Source: Salpingoeca rosetta (taxonomy: Eukaryota > Protista > Choanoflagellata). Taken from it: DNA of 64,000 bases. Position numbers and translations under genes: made by a program. The notes under the pieces are model-generated. The model was not told the origin of the DNA. It made no database searches and saw nothing but the letters and a program-made list of their open reading frames with translations. Location: contig JAWQFM010000027.1 of assembly GCA_033442325.1 (NCBI GenBank), forward strand, positions 873,047 through 937,046, in the 5' to 3' direction. Shown piece after piece: positions 47,183-63,755 of the stretch. Position 1 is the stretch's first letter. Each line of letters opens with the position of its first letter.

Positions 47183-51667
<4,485 letters not shown>

Positions 51668-52086: not shown

Positions 52087-52299
52087 TCACTTTGACCTCT
52101 TCTTCCCCACGTTTCGCTTTACGGGGCCCATCTCAATTTTGGCAATGCCCTGCAAGCGAACAAGTGCAAGAACAAGAAGTGAGGGCGGTGCGAGTGGTGA
52201 CATCATGTCGCGCAAGCTTGCAACATACGAGCGCAAAGTATCACACACAGACAGACAGACACAGACAGACAGACGCACACACACACACACACACACACT

Positions 52300-52383
<84 letters not shown>

Positions 52384-53621
52384 AGCAAGGTTGGTGTTAC
52401 CTGTCCAAAGTTGAGTGTGGAGAGCGTTTCCGTGATGTTGCTCTCGGCAGGACTGATGTTGACGAACATGCACGTCTTTGCATCTCCCCCAAGGGAGTCC
52501 GCCAACACGTGTGTCAATTTGCTGTTCCGGTACGGGACGTGTTTGCTGTTTGTCGCCAGCGCTGTTGATGGTCGTGCGGCAGTTTGTGGCAACTATGAGT
52601 TTGGGTTTGTTGTCAAACACAATGCAGGACAAGGTGGAAGCCGAAGAGGACGTGTGTGCATGACAACCAATGTGTGCATGTGTGCGTGAAAGGAGACATT
52701 CAGCACAACGTTTTCTTCACGTAAACCCATCACGCATCAGCACATCACGTGTGCGTGGTTTTGTGTCTTGATTGAACCTTGGAAGACGAGACCGAGGGAC
52801 GTGAGACTCTTGTTGATGGCGGCAGCTTCGACCAATCGTGAACCTGAAGAACATTCAAGGTGTATGTGTGTGTGCATGCGCGCGCGTGTGCGTGTGTGTT
52901 TGTGTGTGCGTGAGTTGAACGTGGTGCGCGTGCAGGGAAAAACGCGCGTGTGTGTGTGTGTGTGCGGCCTCGACAGCCCCATATGCGAGCCAGCACGATA
53001 CCTGTTGCTTGGCTCTTTGCGACGCGTTCTGAACCGGCCAGATCACACAGCGTCAGTTTCCCCTGGTTCATCAAGCACAACAGCACCAAAGGAAACGTGA
53101 GCTGTTGTCGGCACTTTGACGGAATGCGCACGTGCGTGCGTGCACGTGCGTGTACGCGTGGGTTTGGGAAGAGCAGTACATGTGTGTTTGCATCACCACA
53201 GTCCACTCACTTCCCAACTCCTTCACGACACATCCCTGTACCTTTGATGTGACGCCTGTGACTCGATTCACGCCGGACACCGTCAGCTGCAGAAGAAGGT
53301 GGCTTCGCGAACTGTGAATGTTCATCGCAGTGGCAGCAACTGCATGCACGTGTGCGCATGTGTGCGCATGTGTGAGTGAGTGTGTGTGTGTGTGAGGGAG
53401 GGACGAGTAGACCACACCAGAAACAGTGCAATGCTTCCCTGCACACCAGAGCACAGCCACTGCTGCTCACCAGTTCTGTTCTGTTCGCCGTCCTCCAGGG
53501 CCTGCATCGTGGCGGTGGCGATGACATCCGAAGTGGAGAACCATGGACGAGTGAGTGACGAGAGCGTGCACGGCAGACGGGCAAACTAATGAACAAGAAA
53601 CAATGTAAGACCCAAGCACAC

Positions 53622-53664
<43 letters not shown>

Positions 53665-53885
53665 CACATGCAACGGAACGGCACCTTTGTGACGTCATCC
53701 ATCTGCTTGACGGGACGAGCGGTCAAATTCTCCACAAATGAATTGCGCGTTTTCTCGTCCATGCGAATACGCAGCGGTTTCTGCACAGCACGGCGTGGTG
53801 GTGGAGGGTAAGGGTGAGGTGAGTGTGTATGTGTATGTGTTTGTATGTGCGTGAGAGAGAGTATGTTTACGTGTGTATGCATATG

Positions 53886-53982
<97 letters not shown>

Positions 53983-55003
53983 ACTGACGTTGTCACCGGC
54001 GAGGAGGTCGAAGATGTTCTCATTGTAAATTTCCATCAGTGAAATCTGCAGCAGACGCCAACAACATGTGGACGTGAGAACGCTGCGTACCTTGTCGCCG
54101 GGCAGGCATGTGCGCACATTAACAAGTATGTACACACGCCACTCAAGCTTCCACACATGCACACACACATGCACACGTCTGCGTTTGCCTGCACGCACCG
54201 ACATCTCGTAGTCGACGTCTTCCGACTTTTCGCAGATGTTGAACAGCTCTCTGATGGCGCGCTGTTGAGCAGTACGCAGAGCAGGGGACAACGTGCAACA
54301 TCCAACGTGTGGGGGGGGGTGTGTGTGTGGAGGGGGAGGGTGAACGCACGTGCGCCTACAAACATGGATGCCCACACGTGCAATGTTCACACACAAATAA
54401 AATTATACCACTTCCATATGACATTTCAACAGACATCCACATGCATGCAGGCAACCATGTCCGCACCCTGTTTACGCCTGGGTTGTCGGGTGTTCCCATC
54501 ATGGTGTAGGTCTTGCCCGAGCCAGTCTGTCCATAAGCTGCACAGAGCATTTACAAGGGCGTGTTCGTGAACTCGTGTGTGACAATGTTTGTGCGGAAAT
54601 GTGATGCGGTTGTGGGTGGAGCATCACAACTTGCATGTCGACCACACACACACACACACACACAGACACACACACACACACACACACACAGACACACACA
54701 CACACACACCCTTTCCTTCCGCAAGCAAGGGCCACTTGCGTCGTACCGAGGAAGCAGACGTTGTAACCATCGACGCACGAGGTGATGATGGGGGAGGTGT
54801 CTTCGTACACCTGCTCCTGCGTTGTCTCCGGTCCATACGCTTTGTCAAACTCAAACATCTGCACACGACAGCGCGTGAGTTGGCGCGACAGACAAAGCGC
54901 GGCTGTCGTTGCATGTTTGTTGTTTGAAGAGCAACGCACGCACACACAAGCACACACACACACGACACAGCACACAAGGACACAGCACACAAGGGCACAC
55001 ATT

Positions 55004-55063
<60 letters not shown>

Positions 55064-56722
55064 ATGTCATCACCGACCTTGGATCCCTTTGTGTGGGGCA
55101 CGATGAGTTCGCTGTCGCTGATAAACTCAATCACGCACGGTACGCGGTCATCAAAGCGGCAGCGGCAGAACACGCGAATGTTGCCTGCAGGCAATAGGCA
55201 CGTCGGGGAACAGGCGTGTGGGGTGGTTGGTTGGTAACGACGACGTACTAGCGGCCTCAGCGAAGGAGGTCACTTCAACACACGAGCAGCCAAACAGAAC
55301 CACAAACAGGATCGCAAACACAGGTACACAGACACAGACACACAGACACACAGGCAGACACAGACACAGACACACAGGCAGACACAGACACACAGACACA
55401 CAGACAGGCACAGACACACAGGCAGACACAGACACAGACACACACACGCACACAACACACCTCTGAGCTCCTGGATCTTGTTGTAGAGGAGTTTGCGTTG
55501 CAGGCATTCCTTCTGGTAGCGGTTTCGCATAATTTCCTCGCCCGAAATCGCCGCCGTGAGTCGCTTCTCTGCCTGTGCATTGTAGATGCTCAACTTGCCA
55601 AGCAGCCGCCGGAAGGCTGATAAAATTGGGGGTTGGGGGTGTGAGTTGGTGAGTGAGTGTGCATGAGTGTGAGTGAGTGAGTGAGAGAGAGACAGAGAGT
55701 GTGTGCATGTGTGAACAAAAACCAGTGAAACAAAAGCGTTTGCATCACGGACAGCCTCCGCACCTTCTGCGCTTGTATGATACTCTTCCTTCAGCAGCGT
55801 GTTCTGTTGCTTGAGCTCCTGGTGGTGCGTAAAATGGCAGACAAGGTGAGATGGAGTGGGGAATGGCGCGCGTGTGCGGTTTGAGAGTCAAATCACCGGC
55901 AAATACACAGAGACACGCAGACACGCAGACACGCAGACACACAGACACAGACACACGCAGCCACACACACACACACACACACACAGATACACAGACAGAC
56001 ACACAGACACACACACGCAGACACACACACACACACACAGACACACACAGACAGACACACACACACACACACACACACAGACACACACACACACGGACAC
56101 TGACCTCGAGAGCAAAGTGGAGTTTGTTATATTTGGCGGAGCTGGTGACCTGCGACTCCTTTAATTGCTGTCGTAATCTCGATTCGCTCTCACGCAACTT
56201 GGCCATCTCCTCACCCTATCATCGTCATCATCATCGTCATTGTCATTGTCATTGGGTGGGTGGATGGATGAATGAATGGATGCATACACGCATGCATGGG
56301 GTGATGGATGAGTGAACAGCAGATGCAGGGTGGTGATTGGATGGAACAAGCAGGTTGCTTCCTCGATTCAAACAAACGAGTATCATGATGACAAACACTC
56401 AAACCCCTGGCAACGCCAACGTCCAGACACGCAGCGTGAACGCAAGTGCGCACCTGTTGCTTGAGGAGGCCTTGCATAGCTTCGTCTTTGCCCTGTTGTG
56501 TCATCTCCAGCTGTGCCTGCAGGCTCTTGATCTTGTCCTCGTAGTGCTGCACATCCTCAGCACTCGGGCCCTTGTGCACGCTCTCCCGCTGATGCAAAGG
56601 AGATAACAGAGAGTGTGTGTATGAGGGAGTGCGTGTGTGTGTGTGCGTGTGTGAGCGTATGTGAGGGAGTGCGTGCGTGCTTGTGTGTGTAAACAAAACC
56701 TTACATGCAAGCAGCGTGACTG

Positions 56723-56780
<58 letters not shown>

Positions 56781-56800
56781 GCAGCAGCAGCAGCAGCAGC

Positions 56801-56835
<35 letters not shown>

Positions 56836-57043
56836 CTACAACAACAAACAAACAACAACAACAACAGCAGCAGCAGCACCTGCGCCTGTTCGAGTTGTTC
56901 CTCCAAGTTGAAGATTCGCGTCGCCTGTCGCTCCACCAACTTGCGGCTGTTCTCAAGCTGATGGCAAATGTGACATGGTACAAGAGTGTGCGCGAGTGAG
57001 TGAGTAAGTGAGTAAGTGAGTGAGCGAGTGAGTGTGTGAGTGA

Positions 57044-57084
<41 letters not shown>

Positions 57085-59126
57085 TGTGAGTGTGAGTGAG
57101 TGAGTGAGTGAAACAGTGCTGTGCAACACATGGCCATGTGACGGCACCATCCACACCAGAACTCACATCGCGCGCAACGCCGGCCTTTTCGTCCTCAATG
57201 TTTTCAATCTTCGCCTGCAGTTCCAGCACGCGTCTGTTAAGATCCGCAGCCTGACACGCGGAGGAGGTGATGGAGGGGTAATGAGCGGTGAGCAGGGGTC
57301 GCGCGTTGGGAAGAGATGCAAGCATGTAGATGACACGTGACACATTGGCGCACACTGGACTGCTTCCACAATCAACACAGCACTGCATTGCTTCCACATA
57401 CAATCACACACAATCACAATCACACACACACACAATCACACAATTACATAAGCACACCACCACCACACCTCCTGCTGCAGGGATTCGTGCTTTTCCTTGA
57501 GCGTGCGGAGAGCCGTGAGGTCGTGCACTGTTGCCCCTTGGCCGTGCTCCCCTTCAACGTCGCCCGTGAACGCGCCCTCCTCCCGCTGGCAGCAGCGACG
57601 CAGGATGTTGTTTGGGGGTGAGGAATGATGGTGTGGAGTCAGATAGCAAGCAATGCATCCAGCACTTCATCATTATCCAACACGCACGCATGCACATACG
57701 CACGCATGCACGCACATAACACGTGTCTCCACACACCATGTCCAGAACACTGCCAACGCCTCCACCCCCCTCCCTCAACGTCCCCCTCCCTACCATCCAC
57801 TCGATGGTCTTGTCAACGTCGTAGTTGTTGAGTCGCAGCGCCAGCACTTTTTCCCGCGTGTTCGACCACTTTGGAAACGCCTTCGGGGACGGGATGGATG
57901 GGTGGGTGGCGTTGAGTGGTTGTTTACAGGCTGAGCTGATCATGTTGAGACAAGATGGACAGACAGGGGAACACTCGCAAGAGCAGCACAGACATATGCA
58001 CAAAGGCACAAACAAATGAGCACACAACACAGCACAACACAACACACAACACAGCACAACACACACAACACACCACAACACAACACACCACAACACAACA
58101 CAACGCCACGAACCTGTTCAATTTGTGCGAGTGCGTGCTCTGTTGCTGGGATGACGGCCTCCCACTGCGTCGGCAGCGGTTTGAGCTGCGATGTCTTTGG
58201 ATCCGCATAGAACCGCACGTCTCGCTCCTCTTTGCTCACACACGTGAACACAGACTGCCGGAATGTGCGTAGCAAGCGGGAGACGGGTCGGTGAAAGTGT
58301 GTGAGTGTTTGCACGTGTGGGTGTACGTGTGGTGGTGGTACGTTGTCGACGTGAGCGGACAAGAGCATGCTCATGGGTGGCACAGCCCATCGCCACAGCC
58401 CACCACTTCACCGCCATCACTGATCACAGCACCCATCACCACGCCGCTCATCAGTGTTGAAGCCGCACCTCGCCCGTGATTGGGTTCTCGATGGTGTCGA
58501 ACGAGAGGCCGGCCAGCGTGCTGATGCCGCCTTGCGCACCAGACCTGAACAACAGTCGCGGTGTTGCCGAGGGGGGGGGGGATGAAGTGGCGGTGGGAAG
58601 AAGTGGCCGTGAGGGAGAAGGTCTAAAAGTAAATGGTAAACCGACGCTTGAAGTGCACGCACACACACACACACACACAGATGTATACACACACACACAC
58701 GCACACACACACACAGACGTACACACACGCGCGCACACAGACGTACACACACGCGCGCACACACATACACACACGAGCACACAGACGTACACGATGTTCT
58801 GTGCAGTACTCACCCCTTGTCTGCGTGCGTGTGTGTGCTGTCGTAGACGTGACCGCCGCCCGCCGCCCACACGTCGCCGCTGTCGTCCTCATAACCGTTG
58901 TCGAGCGGTTGCAATTCTGCCTCCATCTCGGGAGTCACCGGCACCCACGACTGCACATTGGTCAAGATATGGTGGTGGGGCGTGGTATGGTGACGGTGTG
59001 AAGTGGTGATGTGGTGGTGGAATTGTTGCGTAAGAGCACATGGCACTGCATCGTGTCCACATGTATCACCACAACCAAACACCAGGGCCACATCCACATC
59101 CACACACACACACACACACACATCCA

Positions 59127-59196
<70 letters not shown>

Positions 59197-61702
59197 ACTC
59201 ACGCACCCACACACACAGCCACACAAACACACACACAGCCACACAAACACACACACACACACACAGAGCCACCCCATCCCCTCCCCCACCTCCCTGACCT
59301 GCGTGTCCATGTCGAGGTAGTGGCGCGTGCCATCCTCTGCCGTGCACGTCGTCACGATGCTGCCGTCGCCCGTCGTGAAGTACTCAAACTGCTGCGCTGG
59401 GTCCTGTCGTGCGTGGAGAGAGAGAAAGGCGATGTGAGTGTTGTGTGTGTGTGTGTGAATGTGTGTGAGTGTGTGAGTGCGTGTGTGAGTGTGCGTGTGT
59501 GTGTGAGTGTGTGTGTGTGTGTGTGAGTGTGAGTGTGTGGGTCCAAGAGTCATTACCATGCAGTCCATGGTCACACTGACCACCCTCCTCATCACAACTA
59601 CAACGCGTCACCATCACCATCACATACCACCACCACCACCACTACGAGCACGCGTGCACCTCGTCGAGACTGATGTATGACTGCGGGGTTGTGTATGTCA
59701 TGGTACCGGTCCTCCTGTTGAAGAACAGCGGCAGTGCATCGTCCTCCTCCCCAGCGAATCCAATCCGCACCCACGCCTCCTCCTCTGCAGCCACGACGAT
59801 GGTGGTGAGGGTGAGGGTGGTGGTGGTGACGGTGTATTGTTATTGCGTGAGGGAAGGCTGATAAGTCATTCAATGAAAAGCACACATGGCTCATCTTCGC
59901 ACGTGTGGCGCACCACCATCGCTCCTGCCAGCCCCATTCACCTCATTCAAACCACCTCCTCAATCAACCACATCCACCCCTGCATCCCCTCCTCTTGTCT
60001 GCAACCCCACCTGAGCCGAGCTGGCTGTATGCGCAGCACATGAGCATGTTCAGCAGCGGTTCAAACTCCGAGAACGAGAGGGCGCCGTCCTGTTTAAGTG
60101 CGCAGTGGCAGTATGGTGAAAAATTGTGCGCGCGTGTCTGTGATTGTGCGTGCATGCATACGTGTTGTCGTGGTTGTCAGCAAGCAATCATCAACACAAA
60201 ACGCAACCACACACCTTATCGTGGTCGTATTGATAGAAGAGGTCAATGGCATCCTGAAGAAGAAGAGAAGCAGCGAATGGCTTGCACGTGAGGCCGAAGT
60301 ACTCAACACACACACACATGTACACATGCACACACACGCGCGCACACAGCACACAGTACACACACACACACACATGCACACACATGCACACACATGCACA
60401 CACAAAACACACCCACCCACACACTCAGAACACACGCACGGCGTCTGAGATGCTGAGGTTGAGGGACGGGGAGCGGAGGACGGCGTCATATTCGTTCATG
60501 TCCAATCGCGCGTTTGCATTCAAATCTGCGCGGCGGAAGATGATGGCCGCAAACTCCTGATGATGGTTAAGTGGTTGGTTGCGTGAGTGGTTGGTTGGTT
60601 GATTGTGTTGTGAGTGATTGGTTGGTTGATTGTGTTGTGAGTGGTTGGTTGCGTGAGCACGAATGCAAATGCATACAAACAAGCATGCCCTGCGCCCCCC
60701 CCCCCCACACACACACATCACCGCACCCTGAAGATGGCTTCGGAGTCCTCGATAAACGCTTCGGATGTGCGCGATTGGCCAATTGCTGCCGCCGACCCGT
60801 CGTCACCCCAGGCTTGGATTGGTGCAACCATCCCATCGCCGCTATGACCACCACTGTCAGCGCCGCCATTTCCCTCGCCCTGCTCGTGTCTCTCGACCGT
60901 CAACTCAGCATCAGAGTCGACACCATCCTCCTCCTCCTCCTCCTCTCCCATGGCATCTGGTGACATGGCAACAGCAGAGACCGGGCGGTGCATGGCGCCA
61001 TTGCTACTGCTGTCGCTGCTGCGTGTACTGGTGCTGTCGCGGGGCGCTGTCGCGGTCCCGTTTGTGTCTGCATCATCACTGCCATGCGGTGGCGCTGCAG
61101 CGACATCTGTGGATTGCGAGTGACTGTCGCCTTCGTCAACAACACCATCACCGTCAACACCTGTGCCGTCCACTGTCAGGGACATGAGCGTGGCCTTTTT
61201 GCGAGCCTTCTTCTTGCCGCCGTCAGCAGCAGCTGTGTTATCGTCCTTGTTGGGTTTGTTGTCGCTATTGTTGTTGTCGTCGTCGTTGTTGTTGTTGTTG
61301 GTGTCAGTGGTCGTGCCTGCTGCAGTACCGGCATCAATGTCTTGCAGGACCAGGGATTCGTCCGCTGTTGGGCCTGAGGCCTCTGCAGACGCTGGGTCGC
61401 TTTTCGCTTGGCCGCGGCTGGCAGGCCGTTCAAGGTGTGCTGGCACGGCGTCGCGGGTGGAAGTGACAAGGCGCTGCTGTGTGCTGGGTCGAGACCCAGG
61501 CCCACTGGACCCACTGGTGACGCTTGATCGCCGTGACCGACGGGAGTGTGGCTTTGACGTCGAAGCGCTCCCAACATCATCATCCTCCCCACCCACATGT
61601 TGCTGCTGTTGCTGCTGCTGTTGCTGCTGCTGTTGTTGTTGTTCTGGCTGGTTGGTGTTGGGCGATGCCGCGTGAGGGGGCACTTTCACCGGAGGCAGTT
61701 CA

Positions 61703-61734
<32 letters not shown>

Positions 61735-61833
61735 TTCGTCGTTGGCTTTCGGCTGCACTTGGATGCTTTGCCGGCTGCCTGCAGAAGGCTTTGCTGGTTT
61801 CTTCTGCTTTGCCTTGCTTGCCCCACTCCCCAT
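52087..61833 (-). CDS. Kinesin-14 (KIFC3-like C-terminal motor) with N-myristoylation motif, EF-hands, WW-like and CUE/UBA-like modules and coiled coil; about 29 exons
   Basis: Neck [22 protein letters not shown]; [10 protein letters not shown]; MEIYNE; NIHSSRSH; DLAGSER; [10 protein letters not shown]. Every upstream exon from MGSGAS (61833) splices in phase into the motor by manual tracing. Confidence 0.85.

Positions 61834-62058: not shown

Positions 62059-63755
<1,697 letters not shown>

Follow-up and report, generated by a model that had tools for sequence, protein, structure and literature searches.

The present analysis concerns a single gene of the choanoflagellate Salpingoeca rosetta, lying on the minus strand of a stretch of 64,000 nucleotides (contig JAWQFM010000027.1 of assembly GCA_033442325.1, positions 873,047 to 937,046), which is referred to below as the window. 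The gene is predicted to encode a dimeric C-terminal-motor kinesin-14 of the KIFC3 type, whose tail carries, in this order, a myristoylation consensus, a long disordered linker, a pair of EF-hands, a divergent WW domain, two homologous beta modules flanking an acidic insert, and a UBA/CUE-like three-helix domain. The explanation that best accounts for the whole, to which we assign a probability of roughly 0.55, is that the product is a lipid-anchored, minus-end-directed kinesin-14 with a Ca2+-responsive tail, and a divergent paralog within a conserved family. As judged from its members, this family comprises kinesin-14s that combine a composite tail with a conserved signal for lipid anchoring and are inconsistently named in the databases, where its sequences are already present; no paper characterising it was found.

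Gene model and kinesin-14 motor

The coding region (61833..52087, minus strand) consists of 29 exons which, chained by hand and checked by script, form a single frame of 1244 codons plus stop with 0 internal stops. It begins with the ATG at 61833 (context caccATGg), preceded by an in-frame TGA 18 nt upstream, and ends with the stop codon at 52089-52087; all 28 introns are bounded by GT..AG, measure 125-348 nt and have consistent phases. Exon 1 is stop-free over 369 codons, and its phase-0 donor fits exon 2 (junction 1, from 60727 to 60556). Database searches of the gene were run exon by exon, while the joined 1244-residue model was translated, scanned for patterns and aligned locally.

In an alignment with ten family proteins, 19 of the 28 junctions (including 17, 19, 20 and 23-28) are crossed with no gap within 5 residues, several of them by near-identical sequence. 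At junction 1 the Phe conserved in the first EF helix is encoded at the end of exon 1, and neither the window gene nor 9 of the 10 relatives show a gap there. Since the family alignments run across most of the junctions without gaps, the splice model and the joining of exon 1 are strongly supported by homology. As to expression, eight sequencing runs from two studies, guessed to be RNA, contain a share of 0.24-0.34 of the 31-mers sampled from the locus; the share expected from a fully spliced 29-exon mRNA is 0.295, and that from an mRNA lacking exon 1 at most 0.184. As far as these comparisons reach, the locus is one intact, expressed-looking gene.

The C-terminal half of the product is that of a kinesin-14. 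The stalk (residues 690-915) has a hydrophobic period of 3.52 residues, a value reached by 0 of 500 shuffles, and contains one Pro in 226 residues. It leads into the neck RGNIRV at residue 916; the sequence ...IQELR|GNIRV, in which the bar marks junction 17, is identical to that of the family across the junction, and the class-specific kinesin-14 neck ends in GNIRV. Pfam kinesin (PF00225) is matched colinearly by exons 19, 20, 25 and 28 (profile positions 43-79, 81-103, 191-217 and 270-322), exon 28 reaching 76.9 bits, and the P-loop, switch I (SSRSH) and switch II (DLAGSE) are intact. The top PDB matches of exon 28 are KCBP, KIFC1 and Kar3, with KIFC3 also listed; the motor of the deposited S. 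rosetta paralog P0015, compared with solved structures, matches human KIFC3 (5wde) with 274 bits, KCBP with 250 and Ncd with 237. Kinesin-14s with a C-terminal motor move toward microtubule minus ends. The initial annotation, made from the letters of the window, had read about 29 exons splicing in phase into one gene, with a coiled coil followed by a C-terminal kinesin-14 motor, and both readings hold: the motor occupies residues 917-1224 of 1244, behind a stalk with heptad periodicity.

A family with a composite tail

Relatives were collected by several routes. Scanning metagenomes with motor exon 28 yielded 80 loci, and with exon 9 none. A 3.5-kb cDNA-like metatranscriptome contig (L006) holds an open reading frame of 947 residues, which starts with MGSGASK and matches Kinesin, WW and EF-hand_7 in Pfam; a word search with its tail retrieved 30 proteins, all of them kinesins of 599-992 residues, including P0015 ('Kifc3 protein [Salpingoeca rosetta]' at NCBI). 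A profile search added a partial protein of Monosiga brevicollis (MONBRDRAFT_37437, with EF-hand and WW in Pfam) and a fish protein. In all, the architecture is common to the M. brevicollis protein and to about 40 transcriptome and metagenome relatives (EukProt, MMETSP). In local tblastn the joined model of the window gene aligns with L006 in one high-scoring segment pair, from residue 368 to the end, with a second contig (L007) in two from residue 345, and with a third (L008) in one from residue 588. In L007:15-2492 and L008:140-2503 the open reading frame breaks inside the motor and the match resumes in another frame, possibly owing to a frameshift or an unspliced intron.

The genome of the window carries three members of the family. 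P0015 is encoded on contig C2 (C2:2711923-2716170) at 91-99% identity, and the third paralog (L092) lies on contig C12 (C12:1664800-1671200); searching this genome with exons 5 and 9 gave only the window gene itself plus one weak match (E 0.11), which is the P0015 gene. The paralogs differ in their division into exons, the C2 gene having about 5 coding blocks and the C12 gene about 8 together with a first exon, against the 29 exons of the window gene. A family profile search with window exons among its rows retrieved no deposited protein for the window gene, and the family searches yielded no ortholog of this paralog.

A shorter form of the protein is found in fishes. The search seeded with a fish tail gave 75 proteins of ray-finned fishes, from sturgeon and gar to percomorphs, which go under the names KIFC3, KIN-14E, KIN-14S, klp-3 or uncharacterized; this search, word-limited and seeded with a fish query, returned no tetrapod protein. 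The fish short form (e.g. Sebastes fasciatus LOC141766895) has the MGSGAS start, two beta modules, the UBA-like domain, the coiled coil and the kinesin-14 motor, and is without EF-hands and without WW domain. Since anchor signal, beta modules and UBA-like domain are kept in a form that lacks EF-hands and WW, the anchor together with the beta-beta-UBA core looks essential, and Ca2+ sensing accessory. The initial annotation had described an architecture not recognised from characterised kinesins; this stands in so far as no paper describing it was found, and has to be amended in so far as the architecture belongs to a family shared by choanoflagellates and, in its short form, by fishes, and labelled KIFC3, KIN-14E, klp-3 or uncharacterized in databases.

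Within the family the window gene stands apart. Its tail module (residues 370-680) and that of the family can be aligned over their full length, at 24-29% identity (E from 1e-31 down to 6e-34), while other members are typically about 45-70% identical to one another in the tail; the motor is 54-64% identical to family motors. The alignment with P0015 is colinear, with all sub-domains present, two inserts specific to the window gene and a shortened first strand in beta copy 2. In a quick maximum-likelihood tree the window gene falls inside the family clade (support 94 in the Shimodaira-Hasegawa-like approximate likelihood ratio test, SH-aLRT), with unresolved placement and an end branch of 1.96, the longest among choanoflagellate-type members, against a median of 0.31; in the same tree the fish proteins group with L008 in a separate clade, apart from the window gene. 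By these measures no other S. rosetta paralog, and no other member of the family, is as divergent as the window gene. Across 24 aligned family tails the residues W, P, W, E, P and Y are invariant in the distal part.

N-terminal signal and tail domains

The N-terminus of the predicted protein, MGSGASK, fits the myristoylation pattern PS00008 of PROSITE, with Gly2, Ser6 and Lys7; five Lys lie between residues 7 and 15, and the first 20 residues contain no acidic residue. P0015 opens with the same seven residues, and the open reading frame upstream of the C12 paralog starts MGTAASA. In the 24-sequence alignment M1 and G2 are each conserved in at least 90%, and the start MG(S/A/N)G(A/T)S is shared by almost all full-length family members. 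The N-myristoyltransferase pattern fits 18 among the 31 relatives of the first search plus the window gene, most of the others beginning inside conserved domains and looking truncated, and a start MG..[AS]S is present in 50 of the 75 ray-finned-fish relatives. The conservation of an MGxGxS start from choanoflagellates to fishes argues strongly for a functional N-terminal signal, here a putative lipid-anchor signal; N-myristoyltransferase is general in eukaryotes. One contig of the family, L007, has an open reading frame that begins with MSIGGG instead of MG.

Behind the signal, residues 16-360 form a linker with a hydrophobic fraction of 0.11, against 0.30 in the rest of the protein; its 345 residues compare with 25-75 in other members of the family. 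For the folded part of the tail, the closest available picture is an AlphaFold model of residues 1-320 of P0015, computed with the family alignment, which has a mean predicted local distance difference test score (pLDDT) of 83. In this model residues 6-31 are disordered, the EF pair is helical (34-110), and there follow a small sheet (119-134), two four-stranded units (158-191 and 214-249) and three helices (259-302).

Of the two EF-hand loops of the window gene, loop 2 (from residue 418) is a strict match to PS00018 of PROSITE. Exon 2, searched against PDB sequences, gave 25 matches at E up to 10 (best E 0.0023), every one of them to the loops of an EF-hand protein. The region is colinear with the EF pair of P0015, which reaches 49.4 bits on Pfam EF-hand_7 (cut-off 30); the same profile is found in 18 of the 24 family tails, with a best E of 4.9e-13, and residues 28-123 of the P0015 model match EF-hand pairs with Z up to 7.6 in an exhaustive structural search.

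Exon 5 is, according to profiles and a predicted model, a divergent WW fold. The first Trp and the final Pro of the domain are kept, loop 1 is longer, and the family-invariant residues W, N, R and P are all present. When protein-language-model features are compared, WW domains account for 28 of the 30 named clusters closest to exon 5, the top one scoring 0.90 with 191 of 256 features shared. AlphaFold, given exon 5 alone, predicts a three-stranded sheet (strands 4-10, 17-22 and 27-30; pLDDT 80), for which Foldseek gives no significant match, though the matches that cover the whole domain are WW domains. Exon 5 itself matches neither Pfam WW (PF00397) nor any PDB sequence; relatives score 24.9-25.1 bits on the Pfam profile, just under the cut-off of 26.9, with 4 of 24 tails matching (best E 5e-6), and the WW of L006 matches at E 1.8e-5. 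A family WW profile that includes exon 5, compared with PDB, gave 37 matches at E up to 1, nearly all of them WW domains (best E 0.008).

Downstream of the WW domain lie two beta modules (exons 6-7 and exons 8-9), absent from the initial annotation, whose mutual homology is supported by hhalign (probability 95.9%, E 6e-9). Copy 1 aligns to the family motif FEY..DG..TT..G.R.Y.D.D.Q.W, and its counterpart in the P0015 model consists of four strands with pLDDT 79-92; copy 2 keeps the family-invariant P..WE and the R.Y.D core. A reading of these modules as further WW domains was rejected, because their hhalign probability against WW is 6-10%. Their profiles found no credible match among PDB sequences, and the structural search with the P0015 model hardly probed this region. 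Two kinds of hit were set aside as chance, namely matches of the beta-module profiles to hairpins of OspA (E 0.003) and the best PDB matches of the copy 2 profile, which are N-myristoyltransferases at a non-significant E of 0.17-0.25, an odd coincidence beside a myristoylation signal.

The last folded unit before the stalk is the UBA/CUE-like domain of exons 9-10. The family-invariant Pro and Tyr are kept in exon 10. Among feature clusters this exon lies closest to CUE (0.84), followed by UBA, which is a lead only; in Pfam it matches UBA_NBR1_C alone, at E 0.095, and the other tail exons match no family there; exons 10 and 17, searched against PDB sequences, gave no match. In the family, L008 matches Pfam CUE at E 0.028, and 0 of the 24 tails match CUE or UBA at E <= 0.01. 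The family profile of this domain, with the window exon included, finds in PDB the UBA structure 1wj7 at E 0.0077 and, more weakly, the UBA of FAF1. In the P0015 model, helices 259-271, 278-287 and 292-302 (pLDDT > 90) pack into a compact three-helix bundle, and residues 251-305 match more than 15 UBA/CUE structures (Z 6.0-6.8, root-mean-square deviation mostly 1.3-2.9), usually over the whole target, among them those of Dsk2, EDD, FAF1, TDP2, UBAP1, Rad23 and CUE1 of SMARCAD1. A CUE fold does not imply ubiquitin binding, since CUE1 of SMARCAD1, one of these structural matches, binds KAP1 rather than ubiquitin (PMC6688830).

On the tail the initial annotation fared unevenly. Its MGxxxS start followed by basic residues and a disordered region fits the pattern and is kept, as MGxGxS, in homologues from choanoflagellates to fishes. 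Both of its EF-hand loops are present, with support from PDB and from the family profile and without a Pfam match on the window exons; its WW-like stretch resolves into one divergent WW domain in exon 5 and a part that belongs to the separate, duplicated beta module; and its CUE/UBA-like segment corresponds to a UBA/CUE fold in exons 9-10 as seen through the family and the paralog model, the Pfam signal being weak.

Proposed mechanism and alternative readings

Lipidation, direction of movement, Ca2+ response and ligands enter the picture as proposals built on the gene structure, domains, family membership and conserved signal described above. N-myristoyltransferase would acylate Gly2, and the lipid with the adjacent Lys patch would hold the tail on a membrane; the coiled coil would pair two motors, and the pair would walk to microtubule minus ends. 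A tail held on a membrane and joined to a minus-end motor pair would pull or tether its own membrane toward the minus-end organiser; the anchored membrane may thus be dragged or tethered there, or cortical microtubules may be anchored. The EF pair would make the engagement of the tail or the activity of the motor responsive to Ca2+, and the WW, beta and UBA-like domains may bind adaptors or cargo. In the window paralog the 345 residues of linker would serve as a flexible spacer between the anchor and the folded tail.

Among the closest known systems is animal KIFC3 (kinesin-14B), which shares with the window gene the C-terminal motor, the long coiled coil and the neck ...LRGNIRV, and which moves membranes toward minus ends in epithelia. 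Mammalian KIFC3 is not known to have an MGxGxS start, EF-hands, a WW domain, beta modules or a UBA-like domain, so that the tail described here would be a different cargo-binding or regulatory end. In the choanoflagellate 'Kifc3 protein' family the domains follow one another as in the window gene, with MGSGAS first and the motor last; the window gene differs from them in the 345-residue disordered insert after the lipid signal and in a further insert, of 55 residues, that separates the two beta modules. Recoverin, hippocalcin and GCAP, which are myristoylated EF-hand sensors, likewise combine the lipid signal with EF-hands in a single polypeptide, and several such proteins are among the weak PDB matches of exon 2. 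In these sensors four EF-hands pack against the N-terminus and hide the lipid, whereas here there is one EF pair, at a distance from Gly2 of 30-70 residues in the family and of about 360 in the window gene; with a single pair so placed, a true switch is at most a candidate.

Kinesins are known to reach membranes via adaptors, via lipid-binding domains (PH, PX) or via amphipathic helices. Phrase searches of about 8.4 million papers for a myristoylated kinesin found no mention; a search for KIFC3 with myristoyl, UBA or CUE gave nothing on KIFC3 among the top-ranked matches, and one combining S. rosetta, kinesin and EF-hand gave only a paper on spectraplakins. Papers on kinesin repertoires mention no such tail (PMC2867816, PMC1434745).

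A number of points weigh against the proposal of a lipid-anchored, Ca2+-responsive minus-end motor. The junctions and the 5' end rest on comparison of sequences, and the RNA label of the eight runs is itself a guess; exon 1 matches no deposited protein among 1.84 billion representative proteins searched, so that existing annotation may model the 5' end differently, although a lack of relatives is expected of a disordered low-complexity stretch. The EF-hand, WW and UBA-like assignments draw on profile or fold, mostly by way of the family, and on weaker tools for the window exons, in whose single tail exons Pfam finds no EF-hand, WW or CUE. EF loop 1 (from residue 380) deviates from PS00018, albeit only at loop position 6, where Ala replaces Gly; the second Trp of the WW domain is a Tyr (relatives carry Lys, Val, Arg or others there), which makes classical PPxY binding doubtful, and such binding is not assumed here; beta copy 2 is shortened at its N-terminus, about 8 residues of the first strand of the family being missing. 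An exon-wise genome search with the N-myristoyltransferase profiles PF02799 and PF01233 gave no match, a result that says nothing on presence, and a predicted complex between the UBA-like domain (with the family alignment) and S. rosetta ubiquitin scored 0.01, which is evidence neither way. Finally, the very long branch of the window gene could mean relaxed constraint.

The disordered spacer, the degenerate EF loop 1 and the shortened beta copy leave room for an unlikely reading in which the gene is a relaxed, partly decayed relic: a fast-evolving duplicate whose tail has lost ligand and Ca2+ binding, which would act at most as a generic crosslinker or slider, and in which the N-terminal signal and the tail are inherited baggage. 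This would agree with the branch length of 1.96 against a median of 0.31, with a module 24-29% identical to relatives whose identity among themselves is about 50%, with the two large low-complexity inserts and with the lack of a retrieved ortholog. Decay of this kind is at odds with the state of the gene, in which 29 of 29 exons are open, all splice sites are canonical and the catalytic motifs intact, and with what the tail retains, namely the exact MGSGASK start, a fully canonical EF loop 2, and the family-invariant residues, which are W, N, R and P in the WW domain, P and Y in the UBA-like one and P..WE in the beta module.

Less probable still is that the tail is chiefly regulatory, the EF pair and the UBA-like domain folding back to autoinhibit the motor or neck, with Ca2+ relieving or imposing the block in the manner of KCBP, and the lipid only concentrating the motor at the membrane. 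Plant KCBP, also a Ca2+-linked kinesin-14, is the best PDB match of exon 28 and the second, after KIFC3, of the P0015 motor, and the EF pair and the motor lie in one polypeptide; the fish short form, moreover, keeps lipid signal, beta modules and UBA-like domain without EF-hands, which would make Ca2+ control an add-on and not the core function. In KCBP, however, Ca2+ is sensed by separate proteins (calmodulin, KIC), which attach to a helix C-terminal to the motor, and the tail is of the MyTH4-FERM type; here the EF-hands sit within the tail, and the motor is followed by a basic tail of only 20 residues. That the model is mis-joined, exon 1 coming from another transcript or being untranslated and the kinesin beginning at or after exon 2, is very improbable: the missing relative of exon 1 in the representative library and the sequence-based nature of the junction support are outweighed by a 369-codon stop-free frame sharing its first seven residues with P0015 and the family, by its conserved EF-helix Phe and fitting phase-0 donor, and by 31-mer shares of up to 0.34 in probable RNA runs, above the 0.184 possible without exon 1.

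The first six residues, kept from choanoflagellates to fishes, point to direct lipid anchoring as an ancient way of moving membranes to minus ends or of fixing cortical microtubules. A bolder version, tentative and more apt to be wrong than right, is that these are the first kinesins with a covalent lipid anchor of their own, descended from an ancestral choanozoan myristoylated minus-end motor that persisted in choanoflagellates and ray-finned fishes. In the choanoflagellate form, the window gene included, the EF-hands would then let Ca2+ gate either the engagement of the membrane or the motor, so that a Ca2+ signal and the pull exerted on a membrane toward minus ends would be directly linked within one polypeptide. 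S. rosetta is genetically tractable, and its three paralogs show graded divergence, so that lipidation, Ca2+ control and the roles of the beta and UBA-like domains are directly testable. The family also allows annotation to be tidied, given that the fish genes now carry four unrelated names.

Table 1. Predicted features of the window gene (positions in the window; residues of the 1244-residue model)
Feature	Position	Strand	Evidence or remark
Whole coding region	52087..61833	-	exon coordinates, phases, GT-AG at 28 introns; homology across junctions
Residues 1-15, MGSGASK and Lys-rich patch, myristoylation consensus	61789..61833	-	PS00008 at Gly2; same start in relatives
Residues 16-360, low-complexity disordered linker (Q, S, D, N, G runs), paralog-specific	60754..61788	-	hydrophobic fraction 0.11
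Residues 361-447, EF-hand pair, from the last part of exon 1 through exon 4, introns 1-3 included	60011..60753	-	loop patterns, PDB matches, paralog alignment
EF loop 1	60488-60526	-	starts at residue 380
EF loop 2	60215-60226 + 60063-60089	-	starts at residue 418; split by intron 3
Residues 448-489, divergent WW domain, exon 5	59660..59784	-	feature search, AlphaFold, family profile
Residues 490-535, beta module copy 1, exon 6 and start of exon 7	58918..59403	-	family motif alignment
Residues 536-595, acidic Gly-rich insert, rest of exon 7 and exon 8	58469..58917	-	no P0015 counterpart in colinear alignment
Residues 596-630, beta module copy 2, first 35 codons of exon 9	58150..58254	-	P..WE and R.Y.D core kept
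Residues 631-671, UBA/CUE-like three-helix domain, last part of exon 9 through exon 10, intron 9 included	57794..58149	-	invariant residues, profiles, paralog model
Residues 672-916, coiled-coil stalk ending in kinesin-14 neck, exons 11-17	55461..57585	-	heptad periodicity, neck identity
Residues 917-1224, kinesin motor domain, exons 18-28	52401..55184	-	PF00225, catalytic motifs
Residues 1225-1244 and stop, short basic C-terminal tail, exon 29	52087..52149	-	family motif GI.KIELGP, then basic residues

The gene is bounded at its 3' side by a convergent neighbour on the plus strand, whose protein-kinase catalytic-domain exons, with HRDLK, DFG and APE motifs (50848-51667), end some 400 nt short of the kinesin stop. 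A short way upstream of the start codon, an open reading frame with a canonical EF-hand loop (62756-63112, plus strand) probably belongs, as an exon, to a neighbour transcribed divergently. As regards the introns, two of them, intron 13 (56589-56879, 291 nt) and intron 18 (54859-55077, 219 nt; both minus strand), are multiples of three and stop-free in frame, so that their retention would keep the reading frame; intron 13 is mostly a TGC/TGT trinucleotide repeat, and TG/CA microsatellites fill most of the other introns.

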